A DNA stretch of 64,000 nt from Amoebophrya sp. A120 (taxonomy: Eukaryota; Protista; Dinoflagellata). A program made the position numbers and the translations under genes. The stretch is taken from NCBI GenBank assembly GCA_905178155.1, contig CAJINV010000010.1:2934587-2998586 (forward strand), written 5' to 3'. This document shows, one piece after another, positions 5,301 to 52,777 of this stretch; position 1 is the first letter of the stretch, and every line of letters starts with the position of its first letter. The notes beneath the pieces were generated by a model. The model was not told where the DNA came from and ran no database searches. It saw only the letters and a list, made by a program, of their open reading frames with translations.

Positions 5301-8061
5301 CTGTGTAAAAACGTACCCACCCCAGAGTTGTCATGCAGATTTGCAATGACAGGAACACTTGTAATGCGCTTCCCCATGAAAGGCATTTCCAATCGTGTTT
5401 CGGCATTTGTAATGCTGTGACCAGGATGAGCAGATGGATTTCTGATGCAGCTGGCCTTGCGAACCTGCACTACACTACGGACTGCAACTTGTGATGCGTG
5501 ACCCCCAAAAGCTCTAGGTTTGTGTTGCAAAATCCCCATCTCGACTCTGGTGTGGGGACGTTTTTACACAGCATATCCATCTTGAATTCTTCATCTTTCT
5601 TTTTCTTTTTTTGATTCCTTGTCTCTTCGTCATCGGATTCCTGCACCTCGAAAAATGCTTTCACCCGAAAATGCTGGCACCGAACTGTTTTGACGACTGT
5701 GCTATCCATTCGACAAAAGCACCCCGCGGACATTTGATGTTTCTCTGCGTCTACTGTGCGCACTACTTCTATTTTAATTTTGTTTTTGATGTCGTACAAC
5801 TACAAGCATTACTACACAGCAAGACCACGGAAGAAGATGTTTCTGAAAGAGCGCCGGCACTGATACTAGTACATATCAGAACATCTTCAAGGAGCAATAG
5901 AATTATTCGTACTGCCACGACCCTGCAACATCAGGCATGCTTACTAGAAGAGTGGCTCAGACTGACAAAAATAAACGCCACGATTGTGCTTTGGTTCTTT
6001 CACGGGATAGCTCGTGGGGTCGTCTGGCAAATCCTGGACAACGCCGAACGAGCCCGAGCCAAGCTCTTTTCCAATACGACCCAGTGTGCTCGTACTCGTT
6101 TGCGCTTCCCCGGGTTTCGGCTTGGACGGTTTCCACGAAAGATGAGCTAGGTCGCCGAGGTCGTGCCCTTCATTCGTGCCACCATCGCCTTCTTTGTTTT
6201 GGTCGTAGTTTTGTGTATACGTATACCCGGCCCATCCTTCAACCATCTTCTCATCCAGTACTTTGTTCCATTCAGTAAGCATTTCTTCCTTGCTTTTGAA
6301 CTGTTTACCGAAAGCCTTCTCGGTCAGATGCTTGAAGGTTTCCGGCCCCTGCTCTTGCATTTCGCGAAAGGCCTGAGCTGTCAGCCATTTCATCTTGTCG
6401 TAAACCTGTGTCCTGCCTCCACTTGCTTGCTTTAGGAATTCCTCGCTGCGGTAGCTGCCGATCAAGTCCGCGTACCATGCATTTTGCACAACTTGGTCAT
6501 TCGCTGCGTCCGAAAAAGCGTACTGATCCTTCGCTCGTACTCCGGTATCCTGCAGCGCCACAACCGCGCGCAAAGTGTCCGCCTCACCTGCGGCGTCCAA
6601 AGGAGGCCGCGGAGCGCCGGCTGTACTGGACAACCGCGATGATGGACCACGTCCAGATATCCTGAGTAAAAACGTACCCACACCAGGGTCAGGATGGGGA
6701 TTTTGCAGCACAAACCTAGGAGGTTTGTGAGTCACGCATGACAAGTTGCGCTCTGCAGTGTAGTGCAGGTCAGCAAGTGCAGCCGCGTCACAGATTCATC
6801 TGCTCATCCTGTTCACAGCATCACAAATTCCAAAACACGACTGGAAATGGCTCTCATGGGGATGCGCATTACAAGTCTTCCTGTCTTTGCAAATCTGCAT
6901 TACAACTCTGGCGTGGGTACGTTTTTACTCAGGATACCAGGGGGCGATGAGGCCGGCCGCGGAGGCGTCGATTGAGAACGCAGTCCACGATATCAAATGC
7001 AAAAGTGTCTTTCTGGAAAGTTGGAACTTGTGATGGTAACTTTGGACTCTAAAAAAATCTGTATTGCATGACCAGCAAGAGGAGCCACATTTGTGCTACG
7101 CGAGGAGGGCATTTGTGATGCGGAAATGGCATCAGGAAGCTTTCCAAAAATCTGTGATGCTGGGTCATGCGTTACAAGCATCATGGGTCATGCCAGACAA
7201 GCATGACAAGCCTTCCATTCTTCCAGACCCAGACATTTTTACACTTGATACACGACTGGGAGGGCCGACCATGGAAGAAGGGGACCGGAACATCCTCAGA
7301 GTAGGCTTAACGGACGACCTGGATGAAGTGAACGAAGTGCCCTCTACTCCTGCTTGTGGCGGAATTCTTGCCGCTGCCTCTTGTTCTAAGAGGAAGCTGG
7401 TGGAGGTTGCACTAGCATCCGTGGCACCCCCTCCGGGGGAAGGTGGGGATGCAGTAGATTCTGACTCCGATTGGACATCGGCGACGGCCGGCTCTTGCTG
7501 CAGCGGGTCTCCGCTTTCGGCGCTGGGTGAAGTAGACGGCGTAGAAGAAATAATCGTGTCACCAACAAGAACATCATCTTGATGCTCAAGTAGAACATCC
7601 CGGCCGCCTGCAGTTGCTGGTGTTCTTGGCGCAGAAACAACATCAAGCTTTCCGCTCTTACCGCTCGAAGAAGTAGAAGTGCCCGACGTGGTCGTTTGGA
7701 AGAAAGAAAATGACGACATCAGCCAATCGGTGCCTTGTTGCAGCAGCCAGTGACGCTTGGCGCCCGGGCGGGGTGATAAAAACTTCCGCTCCTGTTTATT
7801 TTCTTCTTCTTGTTGCACCGGCGGAGGCGGAGCTGCTGGTGATGCGGCCATGATAGGCGCGGCCCCGACAAGGACATCCGTTGGAGTGGTCTCCGTATTG
7901 GGCGGAGACTTGGCGGCAATCCAGCTTGGCGGATCTTCAGGTGCATTTTGTTTTTTGTCAAACCCCGAATCCCGCCCGGCGACAGAGTCAGAGAGGACAA
8001 GGAGTATTAAAACCGCTTTGATATAATTACTTAATGGCGGAAAGAACAGCGACACCACCAT
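2381..8061 (-). CDS. Secreted (signal-peptide) Ser/Thr protein kinase, copy 1; 10 exons, about 996 aa
   Basis: Hydrophobic N-terminus MVVSLFFPPLSNYIKAVLILLVLSDSVAG. Removing 9 introners (each element plus 5 nt) gives a continuous 2991-nt ORF with GSGSFGVV, VVK, AEIIMN, HNDIKPEN, DFG, GSPGY and FDLYAV motifs. Confidence 0.85.
3321..3626. mobile_element. Introner family D (kinase copy 1)
   Basis: Perfect TIR of about 50 bp beginning TATGGATGTGTCAGGATCGAAATCGAC; DR GTTCG/GTTCG. Confidence 0.92.
3864..4179. mobile_element. Introner, B-like (kinase copy 1)
   Basis: TATCCTGTGTAAA...TTTACACAGGATA; DR AGTGG/GATGG; site empty in copy 2. Confidence 0.85.
4233..4569. mobile_element. Introner, diverged (kinase copy 1)
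   Basis: TATGCATTG...CAATGCATA; DR decayed; frame restored by removing element plus 5 nt. Confidence 0.8.
4613..4926. mobile_element. Introner, B-like, diverged (kinase copy 1)
   Basis: TATGCCGCAG...CTGTGGGATA; DR TTTGG/TTTGC. Confidence 0.8.
4994..5240. mobile_element. Introner family A (kinase copy 1)
   Basis: TATCAAATGTAAAAATGTCTGGGTCTGGAA TIR; DR GTCAG/GTCAG; empty site with a single GTCAG in copy 2 near 17430. Confidence 0.93.
5297..5575. mobile_element. Introner family B (kinase copy 1)
   Basis: TATCCTGTGTAAAAACGTACCCA TIR; DR decayed. Confidence 0.87.
5703..6009. mobile_element. Introner, diverged (kinase copy 1)
   Basis: TATCC...GGATA ends; absent from copy 2 (DATKVVK is continuous). 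Confidence 0.75.
6658..6936. mobile_element. Introner family B (kinase copy 1)
   Basis: TATCCTGAGTAAAAACGTACCCA perfect TIR; DR CCAGA/CCAGG. Confidence 0.9.
6991..7250. mobile_element. Introner family A (kinase copy 1)
   Basis: Family A TIR; DR CACGA/CACGA. Confidence 0.9.
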
Positions 8062-15400: not shown

Positions 15401-18400
15401 CCACGAAGGAGGCTATGAAAGTGCACCACTAACCCCCCCTCCGCCTCATGTGTAGTATATTTCTAGCAACAGAAATCCGGATCACCTCAAAAATGCAGCG
15501 CTTGCATGACAGATCTTCTAGGTCCGGCCTTTAGTGTCTTTCGGGGCTCCAGAACTTCCCATGCAAACACGATGAAAAGGCTCTGGCAGGCCGAGGATTT
15601 GGCATTTTTGCATAACAAATGAAGCGAGAGGGAGTTCTTGTCGACTTCCATAGAGTATCAAATGTAAAAATGTCTGGGTCTGGAAGATTCTGACACTTGT
15701 CATGCACGTTTTGCATGAGCCATGATGTCTGTGATGCATACCCTAGCAATACAGATTTTTTGAGGGCTTCTTGATGCGTATTCCTCATGACAAATGCCTT
15801 CTCAGCGTAGCAAGAATTGCATTCCCTTTGGTACTCATGCAATACAGATTTTTTTGGAATCCAAATGCAGCATCACAAGTTGCATTCTTCCAGACCCAGA
15901 CATTTTTACAGTTGATATAGAGGACATCCCGAAGTCAAAAAATACGGGCTGGTCGTATGATATGGGAGTGTCAGGATCGAAATCGACAAAATCGAAAAAT
16001 TTGCAATGCATAAAATGGATTCCAGATCGAACCTAGTTTCTAAGTGGCGCATGACAAATTCTGGTAGTGCCTAAATCGAGTTTGTAATGCTGTTTAGGCA
16101 GAGAAGGCTGATTCTCTCATGCTGCTTTAGCAGCTCGAGCTATAACACCAAACAGGCCTACAACCGGCCTCACTTGCCTGCTCTGCAACACACGTGTTTC
16201 GCGTCATGCATTTTATGCATCACAAATTTTTCGATTTTGTCAATTTCGATCCTGACAGTTCCATATATGAGGTTACGCCGGTCGTGTGATCGCTCCGAAA
16301 TCCCATGTTGTTCGTTTTTATGTCATTGTGCACAAACTATCAAATGTAAAAATGTCTGGGTCTGGAAGAATGCAACCTGTCATGCTAAATCTGAAGCATG
16401 CAAAAATCTGTGTTGCGTGATTTTTGCCAAAAGTCGTCCAGTTTTGGCCAAGTCGGGAGGGAGTTTCTCACGCAGGATAGGCATGAGAGAGATCGCACAG
16501 AATCTGACATGCTTCTAGGTCCTGCATTTTTCCAGGCTTCATGGGTCATGGAAAAGCTGCATGACAAATCGCGCATTCTTCCAGACCCAGACACTTTTAC
16601 ATTCGATACAAACCTATCCACACCAAATTCCTCCCCATACACGCCGTCAAACTACTGCGCCTCCATGACGAGATAAACAGCAACAATACCAATACTTGCT
16701 GTGATTTATCATGCATGACGTCACACCTTTTCGCTCTGTTCTGTCCAGCAGCATTATAAAGTAGAGGGAGATAAAGATGATGACAAGTGGCTTGCGACGT
16801 ATTGAGGTGAACACAAATTTTCACTGTGTCATGCGTTTCTTTCCTGTAGTATACGTGTTCGGGGGAGGTTGTAAATTTGTATTGCATAAAACCCAAGGTC
16901 GCCAAGCTCCAGGATTTTGGCATACATCGACTTTGCCAGGCCGTCGGCGGATCGCAGGGCGCCCGCAATCATGTCGACACTAACATGAACATAAGTAGTA
17001 GTTGCACCAGTGACTGGTGTCTCATCGAGCTCCGGAATGGCAACCCTCTCCAGTACAAAGTGGAAAGACGTCTCGCCTTCGTTCACCAGATTCGTCGAGC
17101 TTTGCCCTTTCCTGGTCACCTATCAAATGTAAAAATGTCTGGGTCTGGAAGCATGCAACTTGTCATGCTAAATCTGAAGCATGCAAAAATCTGTGTTGCA
17201 TGATTACCAAAAGTCGCACAGTTTTGACCAAGTCGGGAGGGAGTTTCTCATGCAGGATAGGCATGATAGAACTCTCACGCAATCTGTCATGCTATGTCCT
17301 ACCTACCAGACCTCATGGGTCATGGAAAACCTGCATGACAAGTCTGGCATTCTTCCAGACCCAGACATTTTTACATTTGATATCACCACAACGCGGTCAA
17401 AAGTTACCACGGCGTTTGGGGCTGCCTGGGTCAGCAGGGTGTTCATAATGATTTCCGCGCGCACGAAAACGCCACAGTCGTATCAAATGTAAAAATGTCT
17501 GGGTCTGGAAACTTGTGATGCTGGGTGGCGTCTCATGATGAGGCTACAAATGCTGGCTCAGCATGACAAGTTTCTGAGCTCCTCGGTGTTGCCTATTCTG
17601 CATGACAAACTGCGCTTCTGCATCACAGAAAAACGGAGCTCTTGGGTAACGTGCATGACAGATTTAAGAGTCATGTCAGACAAGCATGACAAACATGAAT
17701 TCTTCCAGACCCAGACATTTTTACAGTTGATAATTCGTCACTGTCAGCCACTGAGTCTTCATCTTCCTCGCCATCTTCCTCGCCAACGAGGACCCGAAAA
17801 TGCTTGCACCGAACTGTTTTCACGACCTTCGTGGCGTCTCCTGACACACTATACACAACGCCATACGTGCCCGAGCCTAGCTGTTCTCCAATATCCAGCG
17901 CGCTCTTTTCCCCGGGCTTGGACGGTGTGGGTGTCCACGAAACGCGAGCCAGGTCGCCTCCGTCCGAAACTTCACTCGTGTCATCATCGCCTTCTTCGTT
18001 TTGGTTTTGTGTATCCGTATAGTACTCGGCCCCTGCTATGCCCCGCTCAGGTAGTTTTTTTACCATCTAAATTGCGAACAAAAAACTAGTTGTACACAAA
18101 AAAGAAATAAGTATAGAAGTCTCGTGTAGTCCACGAGGTGAACCACTTCGTGCGGCATGCATGAACAGCATGAGGACGTTGAACAACTGGAGCAGGCAAC
18201 TACGCGCGGCGTTCTTTATTTTTTGCGCTGCAGTAGATAAGCATGAACCACAAGAGCCAGGTTCTTCACAGCAACCTGACCTTCATCCGGTTTGCCAGTT
18301 GATGAGCCTCGTCCAGAACTTGCCAACAGCACGCCCAATCGTGTACTAAGATGAAGATGAACAAGGGTGCGATATTAATGATCCTGGTGCAGCTTTTGCA

Positions 18401-21400
18401 TTTGCAAATCCTTGTAGTTGAGGGGCCAATCGTAGTTGCAACAACGAAGATGGTAAAAACACCTGAGCAGCCGATACGTCCTTCAACCATCTTCTCATCC
18501 AGTACTTTTTCCCACGCAGCAAGCATTTCCTGCTCGTTTCTCAACTTACGATTTTTAAAAGCCTTGTCGGTCAGATGCTTGAAGGTATTCGGTCCCCTCT
18601 TTTGCATGTCGCGAAAGCCCTTATGCATTGCAAATATGTCTGGGTCTGGAAAACGGCTGATTGGGACGCCTGCAAGAACCAATGGCCTAGCGGCTAGGCA
18701 TAAATAGTTTTTTGCTTCTGGAATGCATCTGAAACTGAATTTGATTCGTAAAGCACGCATTATCAATTGCGTTTTTGCAACATCACAGAGGAAGCAGCTG
18801 CCCTCTCGCTGCTCATGCAACACAGATTTTCATCTAGGAATGGTGATCGCCATGGCTATGGCGCAAGACACGCATTATATACAACTCCCGCTTTTCGAGA
18901 CAAAAACACAGTTGCAATGGATAGCCGTCTTTTGTCAGCTTTTTCATCGTGTCGAACTCCTGCTCTGCTTCTGCATTGCAAAAGTATCGCACTCGTAATA
19001 ATTACAATCATGCCCGGCAGCTTCCTTCTCCTAGGCAAGACATCATAACGAAATTTCATCTAGGGCTAGACAGTTCACGAGAAAATTATACGAGCAAGAA
19101 TTTGCGAATGCGATCATCATGAAATTACTACGTAGTGCGATATTTTTTACTTTTGCAATTCATACTTTCCTGCCTCCACTTTTATCGAGTAGTTCCTTGT
19201 ACCATGAATTTTGCACAACTTGTATCGTAAGGAAAAATCCCCCCTCCCCATATCGAAAAGGTATGTTTCCGAAAATTTGTGTTGCTGATTTGAGACCCCA
19301 AATCACGTGTGTCTTGCAAGAAGGCAACGCCACAACCTCCGCAGCATTGTGTAGGCGGTTTGTGATGCTGATGGGCCTACAGCGTGGACGTTTCTCATGC
19401 TAGACCCCTAGGTCAAAACCTCTCGACTTAGGCTTAGTATGGGCCTGCATTCCTCCCCAGCAAGACAAATCTGATTTGTGTACGCAAATCCTGCATCAGA
19501 GACTTCATTTTGATATGGGGAGGGGGGATTTTTCCTGTTGATAACTTGGCCGCTCGTCGCGTCCGAACAGGACATCACAATGAAAAACGTTCCCTCGTTA
19601 TCCAAGAAAAAAACGTTGTTAGTGTAAATTTGTGATGCGCAACATGCAAAATAATTGCGTCTGTCATGCTTGGCATGCATCGTAGGGTCCATTAAAGGGC
19701 GTTTTCGCGTACTATCTGCGCATGACAGGTTTCTGCTGTCATGCCAGACAAATTTGTAATGCTGTTCCTCCAAAAAAGTTACACCTACAATGTTTTTTTC
19801 TTGGATACTCGTTTTCCCATATCTGTGATGCAGACTTGTGGCCACGACAACCCACCAGTTTTGTGATGCTAGAAGGCAAATAAAGCTGCTGCGGCCTCAC
19901 TGTAGAAGTGCTGGCGAGCGTAGGAAAACGACCTTGCATCTCCAACATGACAGGAAGCAACTCGAAGTCGTGGGCAACAGCATGAATAATTACCTGCAAA
20001 AATTCAGGCCACAGCTGCGTCTCTTGCCTTCTAGCAAATATACAAATCGATTTGTGTACGCAACTACAGCATCACAAATTTCGTTTCCGATATGGGGAGG
20101 GGGCATAATTTTCCCTTGTGATAGGCGCGGAGTCGGACGAAGACGACGTCGATCGAGAACGCCGCCCACGACGGGGGGACCTCCTGGGGGGGGTCCTGTG
20201 AGAACGGGCGGAGGCGGCCCGGGACCTCCTCGGAGTATCAAGTGTAAAAGTGTCTGGGTCTGGAAGAATGCAAGATTTGTGATGCAGGTTTTCCATGACC
20301 CAGGAGGTCTGGAATGCGAGACCCAGCATGAAAGATTCTTTGAGGTGGTCCCTATCATGCCTTTCCTGCGTGAGAAGCTCCCTCTAAACTTGGTCAAAAG
20401 CGCACACCTTTTGGCACTCACGCAACACAGATTTTTGCATCATTCAGATTTTTTAGCATGACAAGTTCTAATCTTCCAGACATCCAGGGACTTTTGCATT
20501 TGATACGGAGTCTGATCAGGCGATTTGGAGGTGGACGAAGACGACGTCGATTGAGAACGCCGCCGCCGGCGGATGGGAAGGCGGATCATGGAAGAAGGGG
20601 TTCGGCGGGACGCCTTCTTCCGAGGCCGAGCGGACACCGAGCTGGAGGTGGAGGACCCAGTGCCTGTACTTCCTGCTTGTGTCAGAGTTCTTGCCGCTGC
20701 TGCTTCTTGTTCCAACAGGAAGCTGGTGGAGGTCGCTGTACTAGCGTCACCTTTACTATCAACTGCAAAAGTGACTGGGTCTGGAAGATTCTGAGACCTG
20801 TGATGCACGTCTTGCATGAGCCATGATGTCTGTGATGCACGCCCTAGCACCACAGACTTTTTGAGGGCATCTTGATGCCTATTCCGCATGAGGAATGCCC
20901 ACCTATCCTTGTAGCAAAAATATATACTCCGTTTGCTACTCATGCAATACAGATTTTTTTGGAATCCAAATGCAGCATCACAAGTTGCATTCTTCCAGAG
21001 CCAGACATTTTTGCAGTTCATAACCTCCCTCACCAGTACCGGAAGCTGGAGATGCAGTAAATTCGGATTTTTCCGAATGGACGTCGACGGCCGGTGGTTC
21101 TTGCGGGTCTCCGCTTTCGACGCTGGGTGAAGTACTAGACAGTGTAGAAGAAACAATCGTGCCATCAACAAGAACGTCTTGATGTTGAACATCTTCCCGG
21201 CCGTCTGTACTTCCTGGTGTTCTTGTTGGCGCAGAAACACCATTCGGATTTTCGCTCTTACCGCTCGAAGTAGGAGTCGCACCCGACGTTGTTCTTTGGA
21301 ACAAAGAAAATGAAGACATGTTCCAATCGGTGCCTTGTTGCAGCAGCCAGTGACGCTTGGCGCCCGGGCGGGGCGATAAAAACTTCCGCTCATCTGTAGT

Positions 21401-21829
21401 TTCTCCTTCTTCTACTTGCACCGGGGAAACTGCTGGTGCTGCGGCCATGATAGGCGCGGCCCCGACGACATCCGTTGGAGTCTCCGTATTGGGCGGAGAC
21501 TTGGCGGCAATCGAGCTTGGCGGGTTTTCGGCTGCATTTTTGTCAAACCCCGAAACCCCGGCGACAGAGAGACCGAGGAGCAAAGCCGCTTTGATATGAA
21601 CATTATCCTGCGTAAAAAACACGAGCGTAGCCCAACTATGTTTCCTTATTACAACTTCTGAACAACTTTCTTTGCAGCGAAGTTTCAATACATGGTCGTA
21701 CCAGCATCTTCATCATTGCTCCGCAAAGACATAGCCTGCTAATTATATCGCGCACTAAAAGTCGTAGCTGATCCTCGTAGTATTTTACACAGGATATCTT
21801 AATCGCGGAAAGAGAAGCGACACCACCAT
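12463..21829 (-). CDS. Secreted Ser/Thr protein kinase, copy 2, with a C-terminal Pro/Gly-rich tandem repeat
   Basis: Paralogue of copy 1: MVVSLLFP..., GSGTYGVV, VVKTVRC, HND, DFG, GTAGY, FDLYAIA. It has 17 introners plus 1 nested element. The last exon spans an assembly gap, so the stop position is tentative. Confidence 0.8.
13107..13930. repeat. Coding tandem repeat (about 57-63 nt unit, PPGPVLSPFE..AGLWD.HS) spanning a gap
   Basis: Repeat units on both sides of the N-run. Confidence 0.85.
13237..13731. other. Assembly gap (495 N)
   Basis: Run of N. Confidence 1.
14667..15051. mobile_element. Introner family D (kinase copy 2)
   Basis: TATGG..TGTCAGGATCGAA TIR; frame restored (NVLG|TAGY). 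Confidence 0.85.
15096..15323. mobile_element. Degenerate introner (kinase copy 2)
   Basis: Decayed ends; DR TAGCG/TAGTG; absent from copy 1. Confidence 0.65.
15414..15652. mobile_element. Introner family G (kinase copy 2); its sense 5' end is interrupted by the next element
   Basis: TATGAAAGT...ACTTCCATA; DR GAGGC/GAGGA once 15656-15917 is removed. Confidence 0.8.
15656..15917. mobile_element. Introner family A inserted at the terminus of the family G element
   Basis: Family A TIR; DR TAGAG/TAGAG overlaps the terminal TA of 15414-15652. Confidence 0.9.
15961..16265. mobile_element. Introner family D (kinase copy 2)
   Basis: Family D TIR; DR TATGA/TATGA. Confidence 0.9.
16338..16608. mobile_element. 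Introner family A (kinase copy 2)
   Basis: Family A TIR; DR CAAAC/CAAAC. Confidence 0.9.
16615..16888. mobile_element. Introner, diverged (kinase copy 2)
   Basis: TATCCACACCAAATT...AATTTGTATTGCATA; DR AAACC/AAACC. Confidence 0.82.
17121..17382. mobile_element. Introner family A (kinase copy 2)
   Basis: Perfect family A TIR; DR TCACC/TCACC; site empty in copy 1 near 4942. Confidence 0.93.
17481..17732. mobile_element. Introner family A (kinase copy 2)
   Basis: Family A TIR; DR AGTCG/ATTCG. Confidence 0.9.
18037..18476. mobile_element. Introner, diverged (kinase copy 2)
   Basis: TAT..GCTCAGGT..TTTTACCATCT / AGATGGTAAAA..ACCTGAGC..ATA; frame restored (MVEG|RAEY). Confidence 0.8.
18622..18923. 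mobile_element. Introner family A, degenerate (kinase copy 2)
   Basis: TATGCATTGCAA...TTGCAATGGATA; DR GCCCT/GCCGT. Confidence 0.8.
18970..19164. mobile_element. Introner family E (kinase copy 2)
   Basis: TCTGCATTGCAAAAGTATCGCACT...TTTTGCAATTCATA; frame restored. Confidence 0.8.
19223..19543. mobile_element. Introner family C (kinase copy 2)
   Basis: TATC..GGAAAAATCCCCCCTCCCCATATC TIR; DR ACTTG/ACTTG; site empty in copy 1 near 6491. Confidence 0.9.
19573..20123. mobile_element. Introner family C hosting a nested introner
   Basis: CATCACAA...TTGTGATA ends; body similar to 46858-47178; frame restored (SAP|SDAT). Confidence 0.8.
19599..19807. mobile_element. Introner family H nested inside the TIR of 19573-20123
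   Basis: TATCCAAGAAAAAAAC TIR; DR CTCGT/CTCGT. Confidence 0.88.
20236..20505. mobile_element. Introner family A (kinase copy 2)
   Basis: Family A TIR; DR CGGAG/CGGAG. Confidence 0.9.
20757..21022. mobile_element. Introner family A (kinase copy 2)
   Basis: TATCAACTGCAAAA...TTTTGCAGTTCATA. Confidence 0.88.
21604..21796. mobile_element. Introner, B-like, in the signal-peptide coding region (kinase copy 2)
   Basis: TATCCTGCGTAAAA...TTTTACACAGGATA; absent from copy 1. Confidence 0.8.
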
Positions 21830-35967: not shown

Positions 35968-38174
35968 GAGACCGGTACGCGCTGAGGCCCAGATTTTTAA
36001 ACACGATGGCACGGCGAAGGTTAGATTTTTAGCGTCGAGCATACCCTCGAGGAAAACGGGGGGCCCCCGCCCTCCCGCCTCTCGCCCGTTGGGTATCCCC
36101 CCCGCAGGGGGGGGGGCCCCGCCTCCCGGCTCCCGCCCTTCCACCCGCTGGGTACCGCGCCTGCAGGGGGCCCCCGCTTCCCTCTTTCACCGCCCACGCG
36201 CAGGGGGCCCCCACCTCGTCCTTGCCCACGACCCCCCCCAAACCCTTTCGCCCGCGGGGCATCGCGTTTGCAGGGGGGGCCCCCCGGCTCCCGCCCGCCC
36301 AGCCGCTGGGAACCGTGCCTGCCGGGGGGCCCCTGCCTCCTGTTTTCACTGCCCACGCGCTTGGGGGCCCCCGCCCCCTTGCCCGCACGCAGGGGGCCCC
36401 CCGCCTCCCGCGGGCTGGCGGCCGAAAGCTGTCTCCTGCCCTTCCCCGGGGGGCCCCCGCGCCCCTCCATGCCCACAAGGGGGCCCCGCCTCCGTGGCGC
36501 CCCCGCTCGAAGGGGGCGCCCGGTCCCGCCCTATCAGGTCCGGAACGGGCCTCCGCCGTCAGCCTGCCTGAAAGGGGAAAGCTTGGGGGGGCCCCGCCGT
36601 CCTCTTCTTTTGGATGGTTTCACCTTTGGGGCAAAGAGGCGGCCCGCCCGAGCATTTGGGGCCTAGGGTGGGCCGGCCGGCTGCCTTGCTGGCCTAGCTA
36701 CTCCGCCCGCGCGCTTTTCGCCGCGGGCACGCAAGGCGCCGCCCACTTGCGGCGCGCCTGGCATCCGGGCCGCCCGCATGGGTGGTTGGGGGGGGGGGGA
36801 GTGCTGTGGGTTGCCCGTTGGTCCGCCATCGCGAAGGGCGGATGGGCCTGCAGCTATTGTGCCCGCGGGCCCCAGCACGGACCTAACCATTGCGGGCCTT
36901 GTGTGTGTGTTGGGCACAGCTATTGCGCCCGCGGGCCTCACCACGGACCTTAGCACTGTGCCGCCTGCTTCTGTTGGGCGCCTGGCCGGTCCCCTCGTTG
37001 GTGACTGTTATGGGAGTGGTCCGCTCGTCCGCCCGGGGGGCCGCAACCGCAGGGCCCGAACCGTAAGGCAGGGCGACGGGTGAAAAGGTCCACCACACTG
37101 GGCGGGGCGCCCGCGCGCGGCGCCGACGGGCCTCAAAGCGTCCCCAACAATAGTGCTGTTGCGCGGGCCGAAGGGAAAGAGAGGGGCGCCGGCAGTATTG
37201 TACTGCGGAGGCGGGCTGGGTGATTGGTTGTCAATACTCCAGTTGTCAAGTTGGTTTGGTTGTGGTTGGGTTACTTTGGCTGTGGTTGTCAATATGGCGT
37301 ATTGACAACCACAACCAAACCATGGCGTATTGACAACCACAACCAAACCAACCAACCACAGACCACCAGCGAAGGCGGGAAGGGAAGATACCGCCAAGCA
37401 CATGACCAGCGTCGGCGCGACAAGGCGCCAACATGCGCCGCCGCGCGCCACAATGGACACCGCCCGCACATGCGCCAACGCGCAGCAGTGTGGGCGCGCC
37501 AGAAATACTGCCCACATGCGCCAGCGTGATCCCGCGCGGAAGTTGGCAAACCGGGCACGCCATGGCTCGCACAACAAAATTGCCGAAGTTGCGCGAGTAG
37601 CACAAATCGAATCGAAACGCGGCCCCTACCGCCCTGGTTCGGCACAAAGTGTTGGGATAGTTGCACGGCGAGTTGCACCGTGCAACCTGCCGTGCAACTC
37701 GGGCCATACCATCGTGATTCGCAAGGCAAAACGTGCAAAAGTTGCACGAGTTGCACAGGTTTCCGGGACATCTCGGAAGGCCCATACCGTCCTGGTTCGG
37801 CGCGGAATGTTGTGAAAGTTGCACGGCGAGTTGCACCGTGAAACTCGCCGTGCAACTCGGCCGTACCATCGTGATTCGCAACAAAAACGTGCAAAAGTTG
37901 CACGAGTTGCACAAGTTCCCGGGAAATCTCGGACGGCGAAAATTCCGGGATCCTGGAAAAAGGAGAAGAACAACAAAGAGAGAGCAAGAAAACCCGTCTC
38001 GCCCAAACTGCGAACCCGCATGGTATGGCGCGCGTATGCCAATGAATTCGCTATGTTTGACCAGCATAAAAAAAGGCGTTTCACGAGGGTACCGCGCCCG
38101 GGTATATACGCAAGGTTTGACCCAAATCACGATGCTACTACGAATATTTCTGGGCCTCAGCGCGTACCGTTCTG
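35968..38174. mobile_element. Non-autonomous hAT-like DNA transposon, 2.2 kb
   Basis: 26-bp TIR with 2 mismatches, one end reading CAG. 8-bp target duplication TTCCCATT (35960-35967 and 38175-38182). Internal GGGGCCCC and GTTGCAC repeat arrays. No transposase. Confidence 0.85.
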
Positions 38175-38938: not shown

Positions 38939-41923
38939 TTACAAGTCCAGCAACAGCTTGATACGATCGTACGCGACCAGGACCAAGGCGGAGGAGTATG
39001 AAAGTGCGCCACTCGGCGTCCCTATCCTTGTATCTTTTGCATGACAAGTTTCTGATGAAGTTGAAGCACAAGTGGGTACTACACCTCGACAGCCCGGCTA
39101 ACTACGATATGCAGGGGCGTGATTGGAATATCACGAAGTTACTAAGCAGCTACACATAGGTGGGGCTCTCACGAAGTGGTCGCAGCTTGTATTGTTACTC
39201 ATGCAGTTGCCCTGCTTGCTGCAAATGAGATGGAGCGGGCACGTGTTGTTCACTTTCATAAACCGGCACCACGCACGACATCCGCGACAATGCCCTTGTA
39301 GAGCCCGGTGATACCCTCCGTTTTCACGATGGTGGTGGCGCAGTGCAGCGTGCCCTTGTAAATGCGATCCGCCATTGGTTTCTCGGATTCCATCTGCAGG
39401 AGCGTATGGGACGGAAGAATAGCGTGTAGTCTGTCATTCGCAATCTTGCATGACACACGTCACGACCTTTTGATTGTGCAACAAAGCGCATGACAAGCTA
39501 CACAAAATTCATTGTGATAACGACGGCGGACGGTATCAAACGGATAGTTGAACGGACGGGCGACAACACCGGCGACCTGAATGAAATTTGTCATGCGGCG
39601 GGACAGGGTAAAAATAACTAGTACTCGACACACAAGGACAAGATAATTGATTTCGTCATCATCGCAGTGACATTTGTATTGCCAGAAACCACATGCGTGA
39701 AGCGTTTTGTCATGCCGAAAAAGCAATTATACCTGTGCAGCGACGAAGCAGGTGACCAACCCGAGAATCCCTCTGTCCTTCTGCCACGGGTTCAGGCCCA
39801 TGCGGTTATGCATCACAAACTATTTCACGACCTTTGAGCCAAGAGTCATTGAATCGGTTTGTCAAACTTCCCGCGGTTCCCCTGACGCCACAACATTGGT
39901 TCTGTCGGTACTAAGGTGCATATTATGCTTAAGCGTCACGTCGTGGACGCATGACAAGCTAGACTATGACTACTCTGCCTACTTCTTGACTCAAAGTAGA
40001 AACTGTCGTCATTTCCTGAGATAAATGCTATCCATAAAACCCATCTGCAACCCGTATGGGGTTCTCAAGCGTTACATTGTCAGCCGTTACATGATTTGTC
40101 ATGCAAATTTGCTATCACCCTCCACCTCCACGCGATCAATTACTACTGCGCATGACAAATTCCCGAAATAATGGGCCGAACAGCATGAGCATCTGCGCGC
40201 GAAATTTGTAAAGTAAAAGTAATGCGAGAGGTGCAATCTGAAAAATCTCCCCCCTTGTTTCGCTTTTGCTACTCTTGCATCGCAAATGGATGATGTAACA
40301 GTTGAGAATGTAACATTTGAGATTGTCATAACCCGCGGTACACCACGACACCAGCGACGGAGGCGCCAAACCCATTGTAGAGACCCGCGATGCCCTGTTT
40401 TGCGTTAATATCCATCTTAAACTTTCCCTTTTACGAATGGAAAAATTTTTCTGGTTCTCTTTCTGTTCTTCTTTATTCAGTCTCTGTCTCATGATCAAGC
40501 GGCATATGATTACATGCGTCCTGCGCGAGGAAATCGAATTCCTCTATCAAGATCAACGCATAGTGTCTACCACCTTGTTAATCATTATACCATGCAAGTC
40601 CAAGTCCAAGTCGGTCCTCGGGGACCAGAAAAAATAAATACCTGGTTTGCCACTGTCTTTTTGATGCAGTCCCCGATACCGTTGAAGGTTTTCTTCCCGC
40701 CACCAACGTCGGATGCGAGACGGGTACCTAAAAGAAATTTGTTACTTGCCATGCCGAATTGCCTATCGTAGACGTAGAATTTTCAGCCGGCAACTACAAG
40801 AGCAGCGACGCGTCATGCAGTTTATGCATCACAAGCGCAACTTTCAATCATTTCATGGAACACAAATCCAAAAACTAAAATTCCGTCTTCTACTACTATA
40901 CGTGCGAAATCCAATGGGTAGCAGATGGACAGGGAGCCAGCAGCGGCCATACCCGCAGACGCAAGCGGTTATCAATCGGAAAACGATAAAAAGAGTCACT
41001 GTCATAATTTGTCATGCGAGGGTTGCATAATAATTCATAAAGTTGTAAACACCATACTCAACATAGTACACTGATGCGTGCTTCGCATGACAAATCGTGA
41101 CTCCTTTACAGCTTCTTCGTTTCCATAAATTCACCGCGAAGAACATGCCGAAGTCGGTTTTTGGGGAGTACCTTTATGAGAAAATAGAACTTTGACTTTG
41201 TCATGCTAGACAGCACAGACGAAAAGAACATGTCATGCATGCAACACAATGTAGCAAATAGCATCGAGAGAACAAATCTATACTTCGGGAACAGCTTCTT
41301 GATGGTGTCCTTAAAAGACAAGTTAAACGCCTGCTGGGGGATGTATCGCATCACGTTAGCCCCGTTTCCGCGCCAGAAGGACTGATAATTTTTTTTGATT
41401 CGATTTGTCATGCTGGGTGGGCATAAGCGAAGATTTTTGTCATGCAAAGACTGCAAGATGATGAGCATCAACATTATTTTTAATTTAACTTAATTCTAGA
41501 TAAAGGATTCAAATCATACTTACCAGCATTCCCTGCTCGGCGTGCACCCGTGTGAAGCAGTTCATGATCCCGGTATACCGTGGCACCTCCCCCGACCGGA
41601 TCTTCGGGTTGGCATCCTGTGTCTGAATCAGCAGTTTGACTCGCTCGATCGGTGCGGCGATGGCTTTATGCATTGCAAACGTATAATCGCACTCGTATAA
41701 ATGCATGACAAATTCCCTCAGCATGAGAAATAAAATTTGTCATGCGGATTTACCTTGAGAAACAAATTTGTAATGCATGATTGCAATTACAACGAGTACG
41801 ATACTTTTGCAGTTCATAAGTTTTCGAGATACCGCCCGCGGTACCGCCGATCGCGAAATCCTTCAGGAAAGCGACCATCTCGCTGTCCTTTTCCTTCTTC
41901 GGGGCAGCCTTTGCGTCAGCCAT
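38939..41923 (-). CDS. AAC: Mitochondrial ADP/ATP carrier (adenine nucleotide translocase); 12 exons
   Basis: [80 protein letters not shown]. Contains 6 introners and 5 canonical GT-AG introns. Confidence 0.93.
38997..39260. mobile_element. Introner family G (AAC)
   Basis: TATGAAAGTG...CACTTTCATA; DR decayed; restores GAG|SALVLV. Confidence 0.87.
39405..39519. mobile_element. Degenerate introner (AAC)
   Basis: TATG...GATA; restores DTVRRR|LQM. Confidence 0.8.
39577..39732 (-). other. Canonical GT-AG intron (AAC)
   Basis: CAG|GTATAA...TTCAG|GTC; in frame. Confidence 0.85.
39807..40023. mobile_element. Degenerate introner (AAC)
   Basis: TATG...GATA; restores DSI|MGLNPW. Confidence 0.75.
40055..40330. 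mobile_element. Introner family F (AAC)
   Basis: TATGGGGTTCTCAA...; DR ACCCG/ACCCG. Confidence 0.88.
40395..40641 (-). other. Canonical GT-AG intron (AAC)
   Basis: CAG|GTATTT...AACAG|GGC; restores ANQ|GIAGLY. Confidence 0.8.
40728..40901 (-). other. Canonical GT-AG intron (AAC)
   Basis: C|GTATAG...TTTAG|GT; restores DFARTRL. Confidence 0.85.
40970..41127. mobile_element. Degenerate introner (AAC)
   Basis: TATC...CATA; restores AVN|FASAG. Confidence 0.75.
41172..41283 (-). other. Canonical GT-AG intron (AAC)
   Basis: AA|GTATAG...TAAAG|G; restores FPKYSPK. Confidence 0.85.
41382..41523 (-). other. Canonical GT-AG intron (AAC)
   Basis: CTG|GTAAGT...ATCAG|TCC; restores GML|SFWRG. Confidence 0.88.
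41667..41818. mobile_element. Introner family E (AAC)
   Basis: Family E TIR; restores ISKT|IAAP. Confidence 0.9.
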
Positions 41924-43332: not shown

Positions 43333-45833
43333 TCACGCCGCCGCCCGCAGTCTCGGGTGGACGGAATTTTGGTCGAACCTGGACACGGCCGCGCCGGTGT
43401 TTACATACATCGACGCCTGTTGCCCGTGGATGGAAGACAACACATTGTCGCTGGCATCCACCGGCCGATGCTATCCAGTGCAAAAGTATCGTACTCGTAG
43501 TAATTGCAATTATGCATGACAATCTGGAGAGGAGGCTTTAGGTACAACTACAGCATTACAAATTCAAGATTAAGATTTCCCTTTGAGAAAACTTGTAATG
43601 CAATCTATACTAGCAGTACAATGCTTTTGCAATGCATAGATACCCACTCGGGGCCATGTGGTTGTAGATGGGAACCGAGTTCATTCCGTTTCCGTTATTC
43701 ATAGTAAACGACCCTGGCATTTGTACCTGCTGCTGCTGCTGCTGTTCCACCACCATGCCGCGGTACAGTTGCGAAGTCGAGGGCGGCGGTTTCGTGGTGT
43801 TCACCAGGTTTGCGTTCGGTCCTAAATTGTTCGGGTTCGGCGTCTTTCCGTTCTGCTCGTCGAAGGGAATGCCGAATTCCGACTCGATCAGCGATTTCGG
43901 TTTCGGGAGATCGGGGTAGCCGAAAATCGAAGTGGCGACTTTCTTATCCACAGAAAAAAACCCATGATCCCCATCCATTTTTTGCATGGCAAGCACAGGA
44001 CTTGATACGTGTTTCGCATGACAAATTGGATGTGAGCGGGTGTTTTTTCCTGGATATTTCTTCGACCCGTCGGGAAAAACCATGCGGTAGAGCGGGACGG
44101 GAACCTTGAAAGGTTTCGGCGTGTTTTTTCTTAAATTTCTGTTCGAGCATGACAAACTCTAAAGCTTCAGGCTTTATCATCAACAAAGCAGTAGCGGAGT
44201 CAGTTACAGCTGCATGATCCTACCTCTTTCCTGACTGGAAATTCGTCGAAAGTGACTTTCTGCACTTCCACGTCGCGCGCTTGCGCCTGCGTTTCCGCTA
44301 TGAACTGCAAAAGTATCGCTGTTGTCGTACAAATGCATTACAAATTTCCTCAGCATGAGAAATAAAATTTGTAATGCTGATTTACCTTAAGAAAAAGATT
44401 TGCAATGCATGACTGCAATACGACTACGATACTTTTGCACAGGATATCCGTGGTGAAAACCGTTTTCGGGGCCGGTCCGTTTTCCTCCCCGGGCAGCTTT
44501 CCCGTGGCCGGCACCTCCATCCGCATAGCGATGGGCTTCTCGACGTAGCGCTTGTTGGTGCGGGTTTCATACTTGATGTCTTCCTCGACCTTGTCGACTA
44601 CGTACTCACGGTATTCCACTTCTTCCGTGTAGATCACGTTCTCCTTGTATTCTACCTTGGGGATCTCAATAATCCGGTCCTCATACACGATCTTTGGAAC
44701 GTAGGTCAGCTTTTCCTCGTAGATAACCTGGGTGAAGGTTTGCGTTTTCGGTGGTAGTTGTTTCACGATTCAGCTGCACTCTCCTTCGTCATCTCATGGC
44801 ACCTTTCAATGCATGACAAATGCAAATCCCGTGCGTATCGCGCTATACAACCAGAAAATAAAAGATCTACATCTGTATTTAAGCTGTACCTCCGGCACTT
44901 CCACAGTTTTTTCCACCGTTTTCACGATCGGAATCTCTTTTACCACTTCCTCGATCTTGATCTTCGGTTTTTCAACCTATGCATTGCAAAAGCATCGCAC
45001 TGTTGTACTGTAGTAGTGTCGGAAAGTGCATGAAACATTTTCAAATTCAAAAGGAAACATGAAAATGGACTTTGTCATGCGCATTGAAGTGGGATAGCAA
45101 GCAAGTCCTGTCATGTTGGAAGGCTAAGGGCAGGGCGTCCCATTCGTTTATAAACTTAAAACGGTAGCCACCTACGCAGCAAGCAAGTCCTGTCATGCAA
45201 AAATTCAGACAAATTATACACAGTACGATACTTCTGCTGCACCAGAGATAGAATCACCCGCTCCACAATTTCCGGCTTCCGCACCACCTTCGTGACCTCC
45301 TTTACCACTACTTGCGGAACCTCGACCACTTTCTCGATGATTTTGAAGGTTTTCACCCCCACGACAAATTTCTCCTCCAGCACCCGCTCCGAGACAAATT
45401 TACCCTCTTGAATGAAGGAGTCCACGATTCGTTCGCTGTATTGGCTGTTCGGATTTGCATTTGCATTTACACCCGGAGCAGGTCCGACGCCGGCCACATT
45501 GACATTGTTGTCATCTCTCCCTGCGTTGTTGCTTCCGAGTGTTTCCACCTGGTTCAGGAGCAGTTCCCCCGCAGACTGGGCGGTGCCGGGCATCACGCCA
45601 CCAGGTCCTGCTCCGCCCGGTGGTCCACCACCTCCGGCGGCAAATTGAAATTCCTGCTGCTGCAAAGAAAACCGCGCCTGTTGCGGGGGCACGTCGAACA
45701 GCCCCCGCTGCTGCGTCGGCGGCTCATCTTCATCCAACGCAAGATTCAGCCCCTGGTACACTTGCGCCGGCGGGGGGTCGGGGCTGTAACCACCGTCCTC
45801 ATCGTAGTTTAGACGACCGTAAACGTCGACCAT
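43333..45833 (-). CDS. Alveolin / inner membrane complex (IMC)-like protein
   Basis: V/E/K/P-rich repeats (IEKVVEVPQVVVKEV, IVYEDRIIEIPKVEY, RYVEKP). Several introners; some internal junctions not resolved. Confidence 0.75.
43472..43638. mobile_element. Introner family E (alveolin)
   Basis: Family E TIR; DR GATGC/GATAC. Confidence 0.87.
43945..44056. mobile_element. Short introner family H (alveolin)
   Basis: TATCCA..AAAAAA / TTTTTTCCTGGATA; DR TTTCT/TTTCT. Confidence 0.85.
44299..44446. mobile_element. Introner family E (alveolin)
   Basis: Family E TIR; DR TCCGC/TCCGT. Confidence 0.9.
44978..45250. mobile_element. Introner family E, degenerate (alveolin)
   Basis: TATGCATTGCAAAAGCATCG...CGATACTTCTGC..GATA. 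Confidence 0.7.
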
Positions 45834-49700: not shown

Positions 49701-50588
49701 CCGTCCGCCGAGTCGCCCCGGCGTCCCCGTGTCCCACCGCGTGATAACCACAAGTAAGTTTTCCAGCTGCAGAGAATCGGAAAGTAAACTCAGCAACTTC
49801 CCCCCGGCCCCCTGTTCGCCGCCGTCCTCGTAGCCGGTCCTGGTGGTGTTGTAGAAATCTTCGTCCTGCTCCTTCCCCTGGACGCCATTTGTTCTCATCT
49901 TCTGCTGCATCATCAATATCTCTTCCTGGTGCGGCAAAACCTCCCTGATCCGATACGCGTAGATCCAGTTCCTCACGTTCCTGAACTTGTTGTCCTGCCG
50001 CAAAATCGCCATTACAGGCGCAATTTGCTCTTCGTTGATCACGCAGCAAACGTGGGCTTGTAGGATCGTTTTCTGGAAAACCTTTTTTCGCCCGGAGGTC
50101 AGTGTGGAGAAAGGGAGGGAAAGGGAGGAAGTTTGGGGGTGGTTGCTGGGCTGATTTGATGTGGATGAATTACTTGCGTTTGGATTGGTGGAATTATTGG
50201 TCACCACCAGCGGTCCGACCATGGCTTCGAACCGCGCTCGTAATTGCTCCTCAGCATCGGTGTGTTGGTACGGGAGGGGCGCAGGGACGATAGCACTGGT
50301 AGAACTTATACCGGGGGCTGTGAGAGCTCCAGCTGCCGCTGGTGCTGCTGCACCTGCATGGGAAGCAGCTCCTCCGCTGTTGGATTCGGACGTAGTGGTG
50401 GCACCTTGTATTGGGATAGCTGGTGGTGGAAGGGTTTCGGGACCCTTGAATACGCCGTCGATGGGAACGAGGGGCTGCTGTGGCACGGCCGCGGAAGCCG
50501 GAGGACCATGATCTTCGACATTCGATGTGGCGGCATGATCCAGCGGACGTCCACTGGGTGACGGGGAGCCGGTAGGAAGTGGCATCAT
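46733..50588 (-). CDS. IMPACT/YigZ (UPF0029)-domain protein with long low-complexity extensions
   Basis: TILQAHV, NWIYAYRI, GYEDGGEQGAGGKLL, NLLVVITRW and GRLG motifs. Contains 3 introners and at least one GT-AG intron. Start codon uncertain. Confidence 0.75.
46858..47178. mobile_element. Introner family C (IMPACT-domain gene)
   Basis: Family C TIR; DR TTGAA/CTGAA. Confidence 0.87.
47984..48219. mobile_element. Introner family F (IMPACT-domain gene)
   Basis: Body similar to 25819-26054; DR TGGTG/TGGTG. Confidence 0.88.
48651..48807. mobile_element. Introner (IMPACT-domain gene)
   Basis: TATGCA..AAATTTCCC / GGGAAATTT..GGATA; DR GCATT/GCGTT. Confidence 0.83.
49524..49634 (-). other. Probable canonical GT-AG intron (IMPACT-domain gene), 111 nt, in frame
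   Basis: GAG|GTACTA...ATCAG|GCC; AT-rich; carries GCATCACAA. Confidence 0.7.
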
Positions 50589-52777
50589 GATGTGTAGGAT
50601 AGTCCTACCCCTCCGGAAGGGGGTCAAACTCTTGTTCGTTCTATTGCATTTGTCCACCAGTGAGAGGAGAGTAGAAGAGGCACTTGAAGCAATGACTGAT
50701 TCATGATGTCGAAGATCATACTAGTGCAACTAGCAACATCGATGTTCGCTCGTCTGTTTTTTTAGTTTGTCTTCGGGTTCGGCGGGGGCTCTTGAGGATG
50801 GGCAATAAGTGTGCGTGACCAATCGAAGATCATAGGTGACACACAGATCAGCCCATCTGCGAAGAAGGAAAAATATAGCAAGTTGCTGTGGCTCGCGCTC
50901 GCTCGGCCTCCGACGCCGACGCGAAATAATACGAACAGAACGTGGTCGCGGACACGCTCACAGCAGCCCCCGTCTACTTTCTTTGGATCGAGTAATCTTC
51001 TAGCGACACTGCCAAACAATGAAACGCGGCTGCGCAAGGTCCAAGTCTCACAGACACCGCGCGCCGCGCGCAGGGCTCTTGCGGCACGCGACGTCAATCG
51101 GGGCTGCGCGGGCGCTTTCCATCTCAACGGCCGAACGAGCTAAATTAGCCCCGCGGGAACGCAAAATTGAGGGCGCCGGCAAAGCGGGCCCGCCCAGCGG
51201 GGTTCGCCAGCTACCTAGCTGCCGCCCGCCGTGGCCGAAACACAAGGGGTCGCCGCGCTTCTGCAGATAAAGACCCCCCCGCCCGGGCCGCGGGGAGGCC
51301 CCGGGCGTCCCGGAACCCGCTGGCAGGCCGGCCGCACCCGTGCACGCGGCGCGCCGCCGGGGGCCACGCGGGCGAAGGCCGGCGCCCGCGCGCCCGCCCG
51401 GCGGCCGCTGGTTTCCCGGGGCCGGGGCCAAGCTCACAAGGCCGCGCGCTAAGGTGTCGCGAGCGGCTGCCCGAAATAGCGGGGCCGGTGGGGGCGCGCG
51501 TCTGGCTTGGGCTATCGCCCGGGACTGATGAAGCCGGATGCGCTGCCGCACACAAGGGCGGCCGCGTCGTCGTAAACCTCACACGGCGGCGTCCCGAGCC
51601 CGGAGGCCTTCTCGAGCTCCACGCTCGCCACCGACAAATCATGGACGCGCCCACCCCCGGAAGCCGCAGCCCTGTTTTTTGCCGCCTGCGCGACCAGCGC
51701 ACGCAGCTCCGTCCCCACCGGCGATGGCGTGGCCCCGTCCCGCAGGGCCGCCCAGATCAGAATCGAGCTCATCAAGATCCTGCGCTGAGGACCGCCCGAC
51801 ACGCGCCGGCGATCAAACTCCGGAGGCTGCAACTCTTCCTGCCGCCGGCGACACGACTTCAGGCGCCGGCCCCTGCTCGTGCGGCACCACGGCCCATTCG
51901 CAGGCTGCGCGGTCGGCGGAGTGCCATCCGTCCTGCCGCGCTCTGTCGTGCTCTTCACTATCATGCGTGATGCTCCGCCACCGTGGGGCCATCTTGAAAT
52001 GATTTCTGTACGGACACACGACCACGTCTGAAGCGAACAACCCAAAATATCACGAAATTAACATACACGATCACGACGAGGACGAAGATTGAGAGTCAAA
52101 ATATATCTCACTCCTCCTCCTCCTCCTGCGGCAGCATGGGCACAGGGTCAAGACTCAAGCTGGCATAAGATCGGAACATTATCGCTCACTCATCTCTCTC
52201 TCTCAACGCCAACACGCATTCTAGCATTAAAATCGCTTCTCCGTCTCCACCGCTCGCTACCTTCGACCTCAAATCCGCTCTTTGGCCATATGTAGGATCA
52301 CACACAAAGTGATTCTCACCGGGGCAGACTACAACATCGAACTGCATCTACATTCTGTAGGTGAAGTTTCCATCATTGTCTTGGCCGTCGCTTCATCATT
52401 CGCACTATTGGCCGTCGCCTTATAATTTGAATCTTCCAAAAAACCCAAAATGGCCGTCGCGATACACGACCAAAATCAATTCTACGATCTGCATGGTTGT
52501 CCTTATGTTTTTTGCAATGCCAGCAGCAATTACAAATCATGCCGCCTTTCATGCTCGGAAGCTACGATTTCCAATTACAACTTGTACTCGGATCATCTCT
52601 AGATGTACTAGTAGTCCACGATCTACAACTTCTTGTTCAAAACAAGCAAATCCTACTCCCAAAATCTTTGAATGTCCTCCTTTTGAGGACGCGGTCGCTA
52701 CCATTCCCCGCATCGGCGCCGTAGCTTCCATCTCCACTCCGAAATCACTCGCAAGAAGAATAAAAACTTCTACATGA

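Follow-up and report, generated by a model that had tools for sequence, protein, structure and literature searches.

A 64-kb window of the Amoebophrya sp. A120 genome (the whole stretch of 64,000 nucleotides analysed here, G000:C10:2934587-2998586, from the 115.5-Mb assembly that we searched) carries an ADP/ATP carrier gene whose six non-canonical introns are copies of the introner elements already published for this genome by Farhat et al. 2021 (BMC Biol 19:1, PMC7789003). Comparison of the window with a spliced complementary DNA (cDNA) contig and with annotated proteins indicates that such elements are probably excised from the pre-mRNA along with 5 flanking bases, no more and no fewer, and in a fixed register, the 5′ cut falling 1 nt before the TAT that opens the element and the 3′ cut 4 nt after the ATA that closes it (-1/+4). 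The introner system itself is known, and this register is a refinement of it; with eight discriminating sites and one exception we regard it as a lead and not as an established law.

The carrier gene comprises 12 exons and 11 introns, five of them GT-AG and six of them introner elements. Its joined coding sequence, which was assembled in script only (homology searches were done exon by exon), translates in script to 307 amino acids with the DTVRRR-LQM (RRRLQM) signature; the exons match Pfam Mito_carr, and one of them aligns to the bovine and yeast ADP/ATP carriers (PDB 1okc/4c9g/4c9j). A 1652-nt spliced cDNA contig from run X1, with a depth of 70, joins the 12 exons and contains all 11 joints, and its coordinates equal the sum of the exon lengths, so that there are no extra bases at the joints. 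An intronless second copy is unlikely to be the source of the contig, since the 46-amino-acid exon at 39262-39399, the one exon searched against the genome, matches a single locus, the carrier gene itself. RNA-seq runs X9-X11 (2026, same species label) contained no read at ≥95% on the 5,981-base stretch examined and so have no bearing on the borders; these runs probably derive from another strain or from a host-dominated sample.

For each joint we recorded its positional ambiguity, where zero means that the borders are fixed. Three of the six non-canonical carrier joints have zero ambiguity and lie exactly at -1/+4: T/TATGGA...TGATA ACCG/C for intron 4, T/TATCTC...GCATA ACCG/C for intron 8 and T/TATCAC...CCATA CGCT/C for intron 10 (slashes mark the cuts). 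At intron 4 the junction codon is CTT, encoding Leu, in agreement with the LASGG of the solved carriers, while intron 10 interrupts the RRR(L/M)xM carrier signature and leaves CGC CGT CGC CTG in the mRNA. These three are the decayed introners of the gene, in which the direct repeat is lost and little of the inverted repeat is left, and they still keep the register. The other three carrier joints and two joints of neighbouring-gene introns are partly resolved or uninformative (Table 1).

A second line of evidence came from the kinase genes of the window, to which we mapped annotated proteins (P0002 for kinase 1, P0003 and P0001 for kinase 2; P0001 and P0002 map exactly), enumerating for each intron all border pairs that reproduce the annotated protein. 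At three introns a single pair does so, and each time it is -1/+4. The junction codon AG+A of the kinase-1 intron encodes Arg where the paralogue has Lys, and the junction Ser at 21600..21797 is common to P0003 and its paralogue P0002. The intron at 19569..20124 ends in the triplet ATG instead of ATA and retains -1/+4, from which we conclude that the last A of ATA is not essential. The register is thus exact at six sites in three genes, three by cDNA and three by annotated proteins. A fourth kinase intron, at 18033..18477, becomes a canonical GT-AG intron when drawn at -1/+4 (G/TATCGG...ATAGCAG/G); among introners, GT...AG is found only where the duplication happens to supply it. Comparison of kinase 2 with its paralogue supports only the polarity, as at 15923, where the repeats are TCCTC/GCCTC and Ser is retained.

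On other contigs, P0022 excludes +5 at one site of locus L031 (contig C2, repeats TTTGA/TTTGG), needs at least three upstream bases at a further site and at least one at another. The eight introners of P0057 have perfect repeats throughout and are uninformative; introns of the HSP70 paralogues are mostly GT-AG, and the six introners there have perfect or synonymous repeats that do not discriminate between registers. The tubulin loci contain few introns, and P0007 and P0079 differ from the assembly sequence, precluding exact mapping. Homologue searches with the large exons 20443-21393 and 27470-29080 returned no match (two of three such searches). Overall, about 46 introns remove the element plus 5; most of them are uninformative, and not one excludes -1/+4.

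Some further observations concern these loci. In conserved genes most introns are canonical, or else they are introners of very recent origin whose repeats are perfect. A second introner ending in ATG, L030 (sense 4053-4245), has a perfect AATTC repeat, which makes its register uninformative. Two neighbouring introners at 16333-16893 (-) have overlapping duplications, GGTTT and then GTTTG; drawn at -1/+4 they leave between them a lone exon base, T at 16610, where the initial annotation of the window would leave G at 16609. Successive removal of the two would avoid a true 1-nt exon.

Table 1. Features of the carrier gene, the neighbouring gene and the kinase genes. Slashes mark cuts; repeats are given as upstream/downstream copy; the positional ambiguity of each cDNA joint is in brackets.
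Feature	Coordinates	Strand	Borders	Direct repeats	cDNA joint	Register or remark
ADP/ATP carrier gene	38939..41923	(-)				12 exons; start ATG at 41923, stop TAA at 38941-38939
Non-canonical intron 1, 157 nt	41663..41819	(-)	T/TATGAACTGC...GCATA+AAGC	AAACT/AAGCC	41662>41820 (1)	+4 or +3 allowed, +5 excluded; mRNA AAAC+C
Canonical GT-AG intron 2	41382..41523	(-)			CT..AC on + strand = GT..AG sense
Other canonical GT-AG carrier introns	41172-41283, 40728-40901, 40395-40641, 39577-39732	(-)			CT..AC on + strand
Non-canonical intron 4, 163 nt	40966..41128	(-)	T/TATGGAAACG...TGATA+ACCG	GAATT/ACCGC	40965>41129 (0)	exactly -1/+4
Non-canonical intron 7, 281 nt	40051..40331	(-)		CGGGT, perfect 5-bp duplication	40048>40330 (6)	uninformative; coordinates drawn in -1/+4
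Non-canonical intron 8, 222 nt	39803..40024	(-)	T/TATCTCAGG...GCATA+ACCG	GCATT/ACCGC	39802>40025 (0)	exactly -1/+4
Non-canonical intron 10, 120 nt	39401..39520	(-)	T/TATCACAATG...CCATA+CGCT	GTCGT/CGCTC	39400>39521 (0)	exactly -1/+4
Non-canonical intron 11, 269 nt	38993..39261	(-)	T/TATGAAAGTG...TTCATA+CTCC	CGGTT/CTCCT	38991>39261 (1)	+4 or +5 allowed
Non-canonical intron, neighbouring gene	43468..43639	(-)		GTATC/GCATC	43466>43639 (3)	upstream base 2 retained; fits -1/+4
Non-canonical intron, neighbouring gene	44295..44447	(-)		ACGGA/GCGGA	44293>44447 (4)	upstream base 1 retained; fits -1/+4
Kinase-1 intron	5699..6010	(-)	C/TATCCCGTG...GGATA+GCAC			sole pair reproducing P0002; exactly -1/+4
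Kinase-2 intron	21600..21797	(-)	A/TATCCTGTG...GGATA+ATGT			sole pair reproducing P0003; exactly -1/+4
Kinase-2 intron	19569..20124	(-)	C/TATCACAAGG...GTGATG+TCCT			sole pair reproducing P0003; exactly -1/+4
Kinase-2 introner	18033..18477	(-)	G/TATCGGCTG...GCATA+GCAG/G			+4, +5 or +6 allowed

To describe the elements themselves, we collected all TAT...ATA pairs in the window with at least 11 of 14 terminal inverted-repeat matches, which gave 70 pairs. In 28 of these the flanking 5-mers match at four or more positions (17 perfect and 11 at 4/5), against 0.15 expected from shuffled windows. Since this repeat signal is gone when the 5-mers are shifted outward from the element ends, and since the bases that immediately flank the 5-mers on the outer side agree no more often than by chance (4/17 on each side), the duplication measures exactly 5 bp. 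The elements, 110-390 nt in length, have termini that read TAT(C/G)-7 nt-AAAA ... (G/C)ATA; examples of the inverted repeats (TATCAAATGTAAAA, TATCCTGTGTAAAA and TATGCATTGCAAAA) follow the pattern TAT + 7 nt + AAA(A) that was published for A120. Judged from their sequence, with terminal inverted repeats (TIRs), a fixed 5-bp target-site duplication and many copies, they look like short non-autonomous TIR DNA transposons resembling miniature inverted-repeat transposable elements (MITEs). Peptides read from introner sequence matched hundreds of genomic sites, and integrase-like TIR elements have been reported in A120 in the literature. Where the inverted repeats are intact, the predicted fold pairs intron bases 2-6 with bases 5-9 counted from the 3′ end, leaving a 5′ tail of 0-1 nt and a 3′ tail of 4 nt. 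Both intron ends are unconstrained, with T, C, A and G all seen as the first base and C, G and T as the last.

Two side observations relate to introner sequence. The motif GCAT[G/C/T]AC is frequent in introns, often lying within sub-terminal inverted-repeat arms; as 11 of 28 introners examined, carrier introns 8, 10 and 11 among them, lack it, and as its distance to the 3′ end varies between 44 and 300 nt in the others, it is not an obligatory branch signal. Database proteins, P0007, P0022, P0079 and P0021 among them, often begin or end with introner-derived peptides (for example ...HQEALKKSVLLGYASQTSWLMQNVHDK...), and it seems that introners are frequently retained or mis-called in the gene models.

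Under the -1/+4 register, the mRNA would keep bases 1-4 of the upstream duplication copy plus base 5 of the downstream copy, and, with the spacers of 1 and 4 adding up to the duplication length, a fresh exonic insertion would be excised without a scar. The 5′ cut may be placed by the same recognition as the canonical donor G/TAT, N/TAT lying in the same register with position +1 relaxed, while the 3′ cut would be placed by its distance from the terminal AUA or the terminal helix and not by AG. Canonical introns begin with GTAT in four of five cases in the carrier gene and in 9/17 in the HSP70 paralogues. Across the HSP70 loci (L019-L028) canonical introns run from GTA(T/A)... to ...CAG/GT, the downstream exon starting with GT in 14 of 17. 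Because the three decisive carrier introns keep the register without a predicted helix, the terminal triplets themselves seem to matter.

The agent is most likely a major spliceosome that lacks U1 and reads positions +2..+4. Spliceosomal excision is accordingly the favoured process over a separate machinery, the lariat and the spliceosome dependence being putative here. The genome has a U6 whose ACAGAGA box is normal. U1, U11, U12 and U6atac were not found, a weak negative that agrees with the published analysis (PMC7789003); for U11, U12 and U6atac about 41-45 of thousands of candidates were scored, the U11 control genomes also yielding no match.

Several points weigh against a fixed -1/+4 register and its proposed reading. 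Only eight sites discriminate +4 from +5; most introners have perfect duplications and are uninformative. The protein-based sites depend on the published annotation, which probably shares the same RNA study with the cDNA contig, in which case the two are not independent data, and the contig reveals the dominant isoform only. The decayed carrier introns have no predicted terminal helix, which weakens a ruler based on the helix and not one based on sequence motifs. Finally, the intron at L031:1435-1913 (-; G000:C2) loses the element plus 3 instead of plus 5 despite its clean TAT/ATA ends. Its termini are intact (TATCCTGTG.../...CACTGCATA), and it can be drawn at -1/+2, 0/+3 or +1/+4. This intron, which may join the ends of two different elements, is the sole exception found to the rule that the spacers sum to 5, and because of it the ruler cannot be absolute.

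The alternative that retains most weight, which we nevertheless consider unlikely, is a non-spliceosomal machinery that measures from paired intron ends, as proposed for the nonconventional introns of Euglena (Nomura et al. 2025, PMC12501133), possibly with a circular RNA product. The two systems are alike in many respects: neither has conserved terminal dinucleotides, both have a complementary triplet near each end and fixed asymmetric spacers, the 3′ spacer being longer by about 3 nt, and both have a suspected MITE origin with duplication-like repeats at the junctions. The terminal inverted repeats of A120 would bring the intron ends together, the failure to find U1 (a weak negative, in agreement with PMC7789003) points the same way, and the Euglena code, 5′-N3-CDG...CH'G-N5-6/R, follows a like logic of a paired triplet with asymmetric spacers that differ by 2-3 nt. 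However, the A120 register coincides with that of the canonical GTAT donor, the same type of element can be a bona fide GT-AG intron, the register outlasts the loss of the predicted terminal helix, and a nearly full spliceosome has been reported for the A120 genome (PMC7789003). The details differ as well. In Euglena the triplets are CAG/CTG at +4..+6 and -8..-6, whereas in A120 they are TAT/ATA at +2..+4 and -7..-5, with spacers of 1 and 4; Euglena prefers a purine at the start of the downstream exon, whereas the downstream exon in A120 starts with C, T, A or G. The circular product is a Euglena feature, and the Euglena and Amoebophrya lineages are unrelated.

It is very improbable that there is no fixed register at all, with the cut falling anywhere within the repeat and -1/+4 being an accident of a small sample. 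Such a view could draw on the published analysis, in which the inverted repeats lie 1-5 nt from the called splice sites and the border is 'unknown' (PMC7789003), and on the one intron that removes the element plus 3. Against it, the six fully resolved sites in three genes agree, for which the chance is about (1/6)^5 if registers 0-5 are equiprobable, and +4 is included at every partly resolved site; the spread of called borders is also what identical repeats alone would produce in aligner output.

The rule proposed in the initial annotation, under which each intron opens at the T of TAT and closes 5 nt beyond ATA, the upstream 5-mer being wholly exonic, can hardly be right in that exact form. 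It gave the correct frame, the correct residues at four of the five carrier sites that it listed, and a fit to the intron at 38993-39261 and to every perfect-duplication site. Yet it is excluded at eight sites: by the cDNA at 39401-39520, 39803-40024 and 40966-41128, each with zero ambiguity, and at 41663-41819, and by proteins at 5699-6010, 21600-21797, 19569-20124 and the L031 site with TTTGA/TTTGG. The cDNA joints at the carrier sites cut inside the direct repeat, the very outcome that the annotation had named as refuting its rule, and it is the downstream copy that supplies base 5 of the repeat to the mRNA. Of its carrier junctions, DTVRRR/LQM, ISKT/IAAP, GAG/SALV and DSI/MG are borne out by the contig, whereas the predicted AVN/FASAG is AVN/LASAG in the cDNA, the Phe of that rule being replaced by the Leu that the solved carriers also have. 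The kinase sites 3864, 4233 and 18037, invoked in its favour, are compatible with +5 and equally with +4 (18037 also with +6), and site 21604, held to be ambiguous, resolves to -1/+4 (intron 21600-21797).

Much of that annotation stands all the same. An equally precise rule, with borders shifted by one base, takes the place of the original one; the upstream repeat copy is essentially exonic, as claimed, with its bases 1-4 kept in the mRNA according to the cDNA; and the cDNA joints confirm that the 3′ site lacks AG and lies at a constant distance from the terminal ATA. The net removal is the element plus 5 nt, which undoes the 5-bp target-site duplication at the RNA level, and this spacing does outlast decay of the direct repeat and most of the TIR, since the three unambiguous carrier sites are the decayed ones.

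RNA editing could rescue the 0/+5 borders only with T>C changes at four carrier sites and C>A, A>T and C>G changes elsewhere, and was rejected. We also rejected U12-type introns, as any first base is allowed, the 28 introns checked all lack a TCCTTRAY branch motif and a TATCCT donor is confined to one subfamily, as well as ordinary U2-type borders, the non-canonical introns lacking GT/AG termini.

Direct repeats at borders are a classic signature of template switching, and in ciliates elements bounded by inverted repeats are precisely excised at the DNA level. That the joints reflect a reverse transcriptase switching template from one direct repeat to the other, or excision of the element from the DNA, and not RNA splicing, is still practically out of the question here, since microhomology is zero at the three decisive joints, stops abound in the unspliced gene while the joined form is a complete conserved carrier, the spliced contig has a depth of 70 against about 4-6 for intron-bearing contigs of the same run, two other runs contain 90% of the words of the unspliced stretch, and the assembly has a single copy of the one exon that was searched.

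With respect to known systems, the closest is A120 itself. There, non-canonical introns make up over 60% of the total and have inverted repeats of 8-20 nt, direct repeats of 3-5 nt and hairpins; the inverted repeats start with TAT, followed by about 7 variable nt and at least three A, and U1 was not found (PMC7789003). The published transposon-derived introns of Amoebophrya that lack GT-AG number in the thousands, and in strain A25 the inverted repeats start with TTA. The introns described here come from the same genome and are the same elements, without GT-AG (Farhat et al. 2021), and we found TAT inverted repeats, direct repeats at the borders and non-GT-AG removal at six carrier and two neighbouring-gene joints. 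In that work the place of splicing with respect to the hairpin is shown as 'variable', and the border is labelled 'unknown' (PMC7789003); here the diverged repeats fix the cuts, 1 nt ahead of TAT and 4 nt beyond ATA.

The introners of Micromonas, Aureococcus and Polarella and other transposon-derived introns are likewise exonic insertions that are spliced at once, with the duplication contributing to or flanking the splice sites (PMC9860276, PMC12130899); those introners, however, carry or create GT/AG, whereas the ends in A120 are free and the sites are defined by position relative to the element termini. The U12 donor /RTATCCTT has the same register and nearly the same letters as the N/TATCCTG subfamily of A120, but its first base is a purine where A120 accepts any base, and other A120 subfamilies start with TATCAA, TATGCA or TATGGA. 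In the tunicates Fritillaria and Oikopleura many introns are likewise non-GT/AG, of probable MITE origin, and a modified major spliceosome has been invoked; the motifs and the lineage differ, and the portion of that account available to us describes no hairpin or duplication ruler (PMC13326754).

We did not find a fixed -1/+4 register stated in the literature searched after Farhat et al. 2021, and the corrected register appears to be unreported. If true, it would put a testable code in place of a border so far described as 'variable, unknown', and the sum of 1+4 as the duplication length would explain the immediate tolerance of insertions in essential genes such as that of the ADP/ATP carrier. 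It would also give gene predictors an exact border rule for the A120 genome, where the one-base shift yields Leu instead of Phe in the carrier and Arg/Ser/Arg instead of Ser/Arg/Pro in the kinase genes. A bolder formulation is conceivable, to which we would not yet commit: the code would be N/N-UAU ... AUA-NNNN/N, free of dinucleotides and with spacers summing to the 5-bp duplication, so that insertions are self-healing; the 'variable' borders of the literature would be an alignment artefact; and, following that of Euglena, it would become the second non-GT-AG code that can be defined, arisen independently in an alveolate and read by a U1-less spliceosome in the GUAU register.

A few other features of the window were noted. 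A kinase-2 exon contains at 20584-20605 (-) a 21-nt tandem duplication (two copies of CCGAACCCCTTCTTCCATGAT), of which P0003 has one copy fewer; the difference reflects either 21 nt called as an 'intron' or a polymorphism. A run of N at about 13,700, an assembly gap, lies in the large, repeat-rich C-terminal kinase-2 exon at 12466-14640 (-), and P0001 skips 687 nt there. Among 2-kb bins, 36001-38000 (0.66) and 50001-52000 (0.63) stand out by their high G+C content, compared with about 0.45-0.54 elsewhere.

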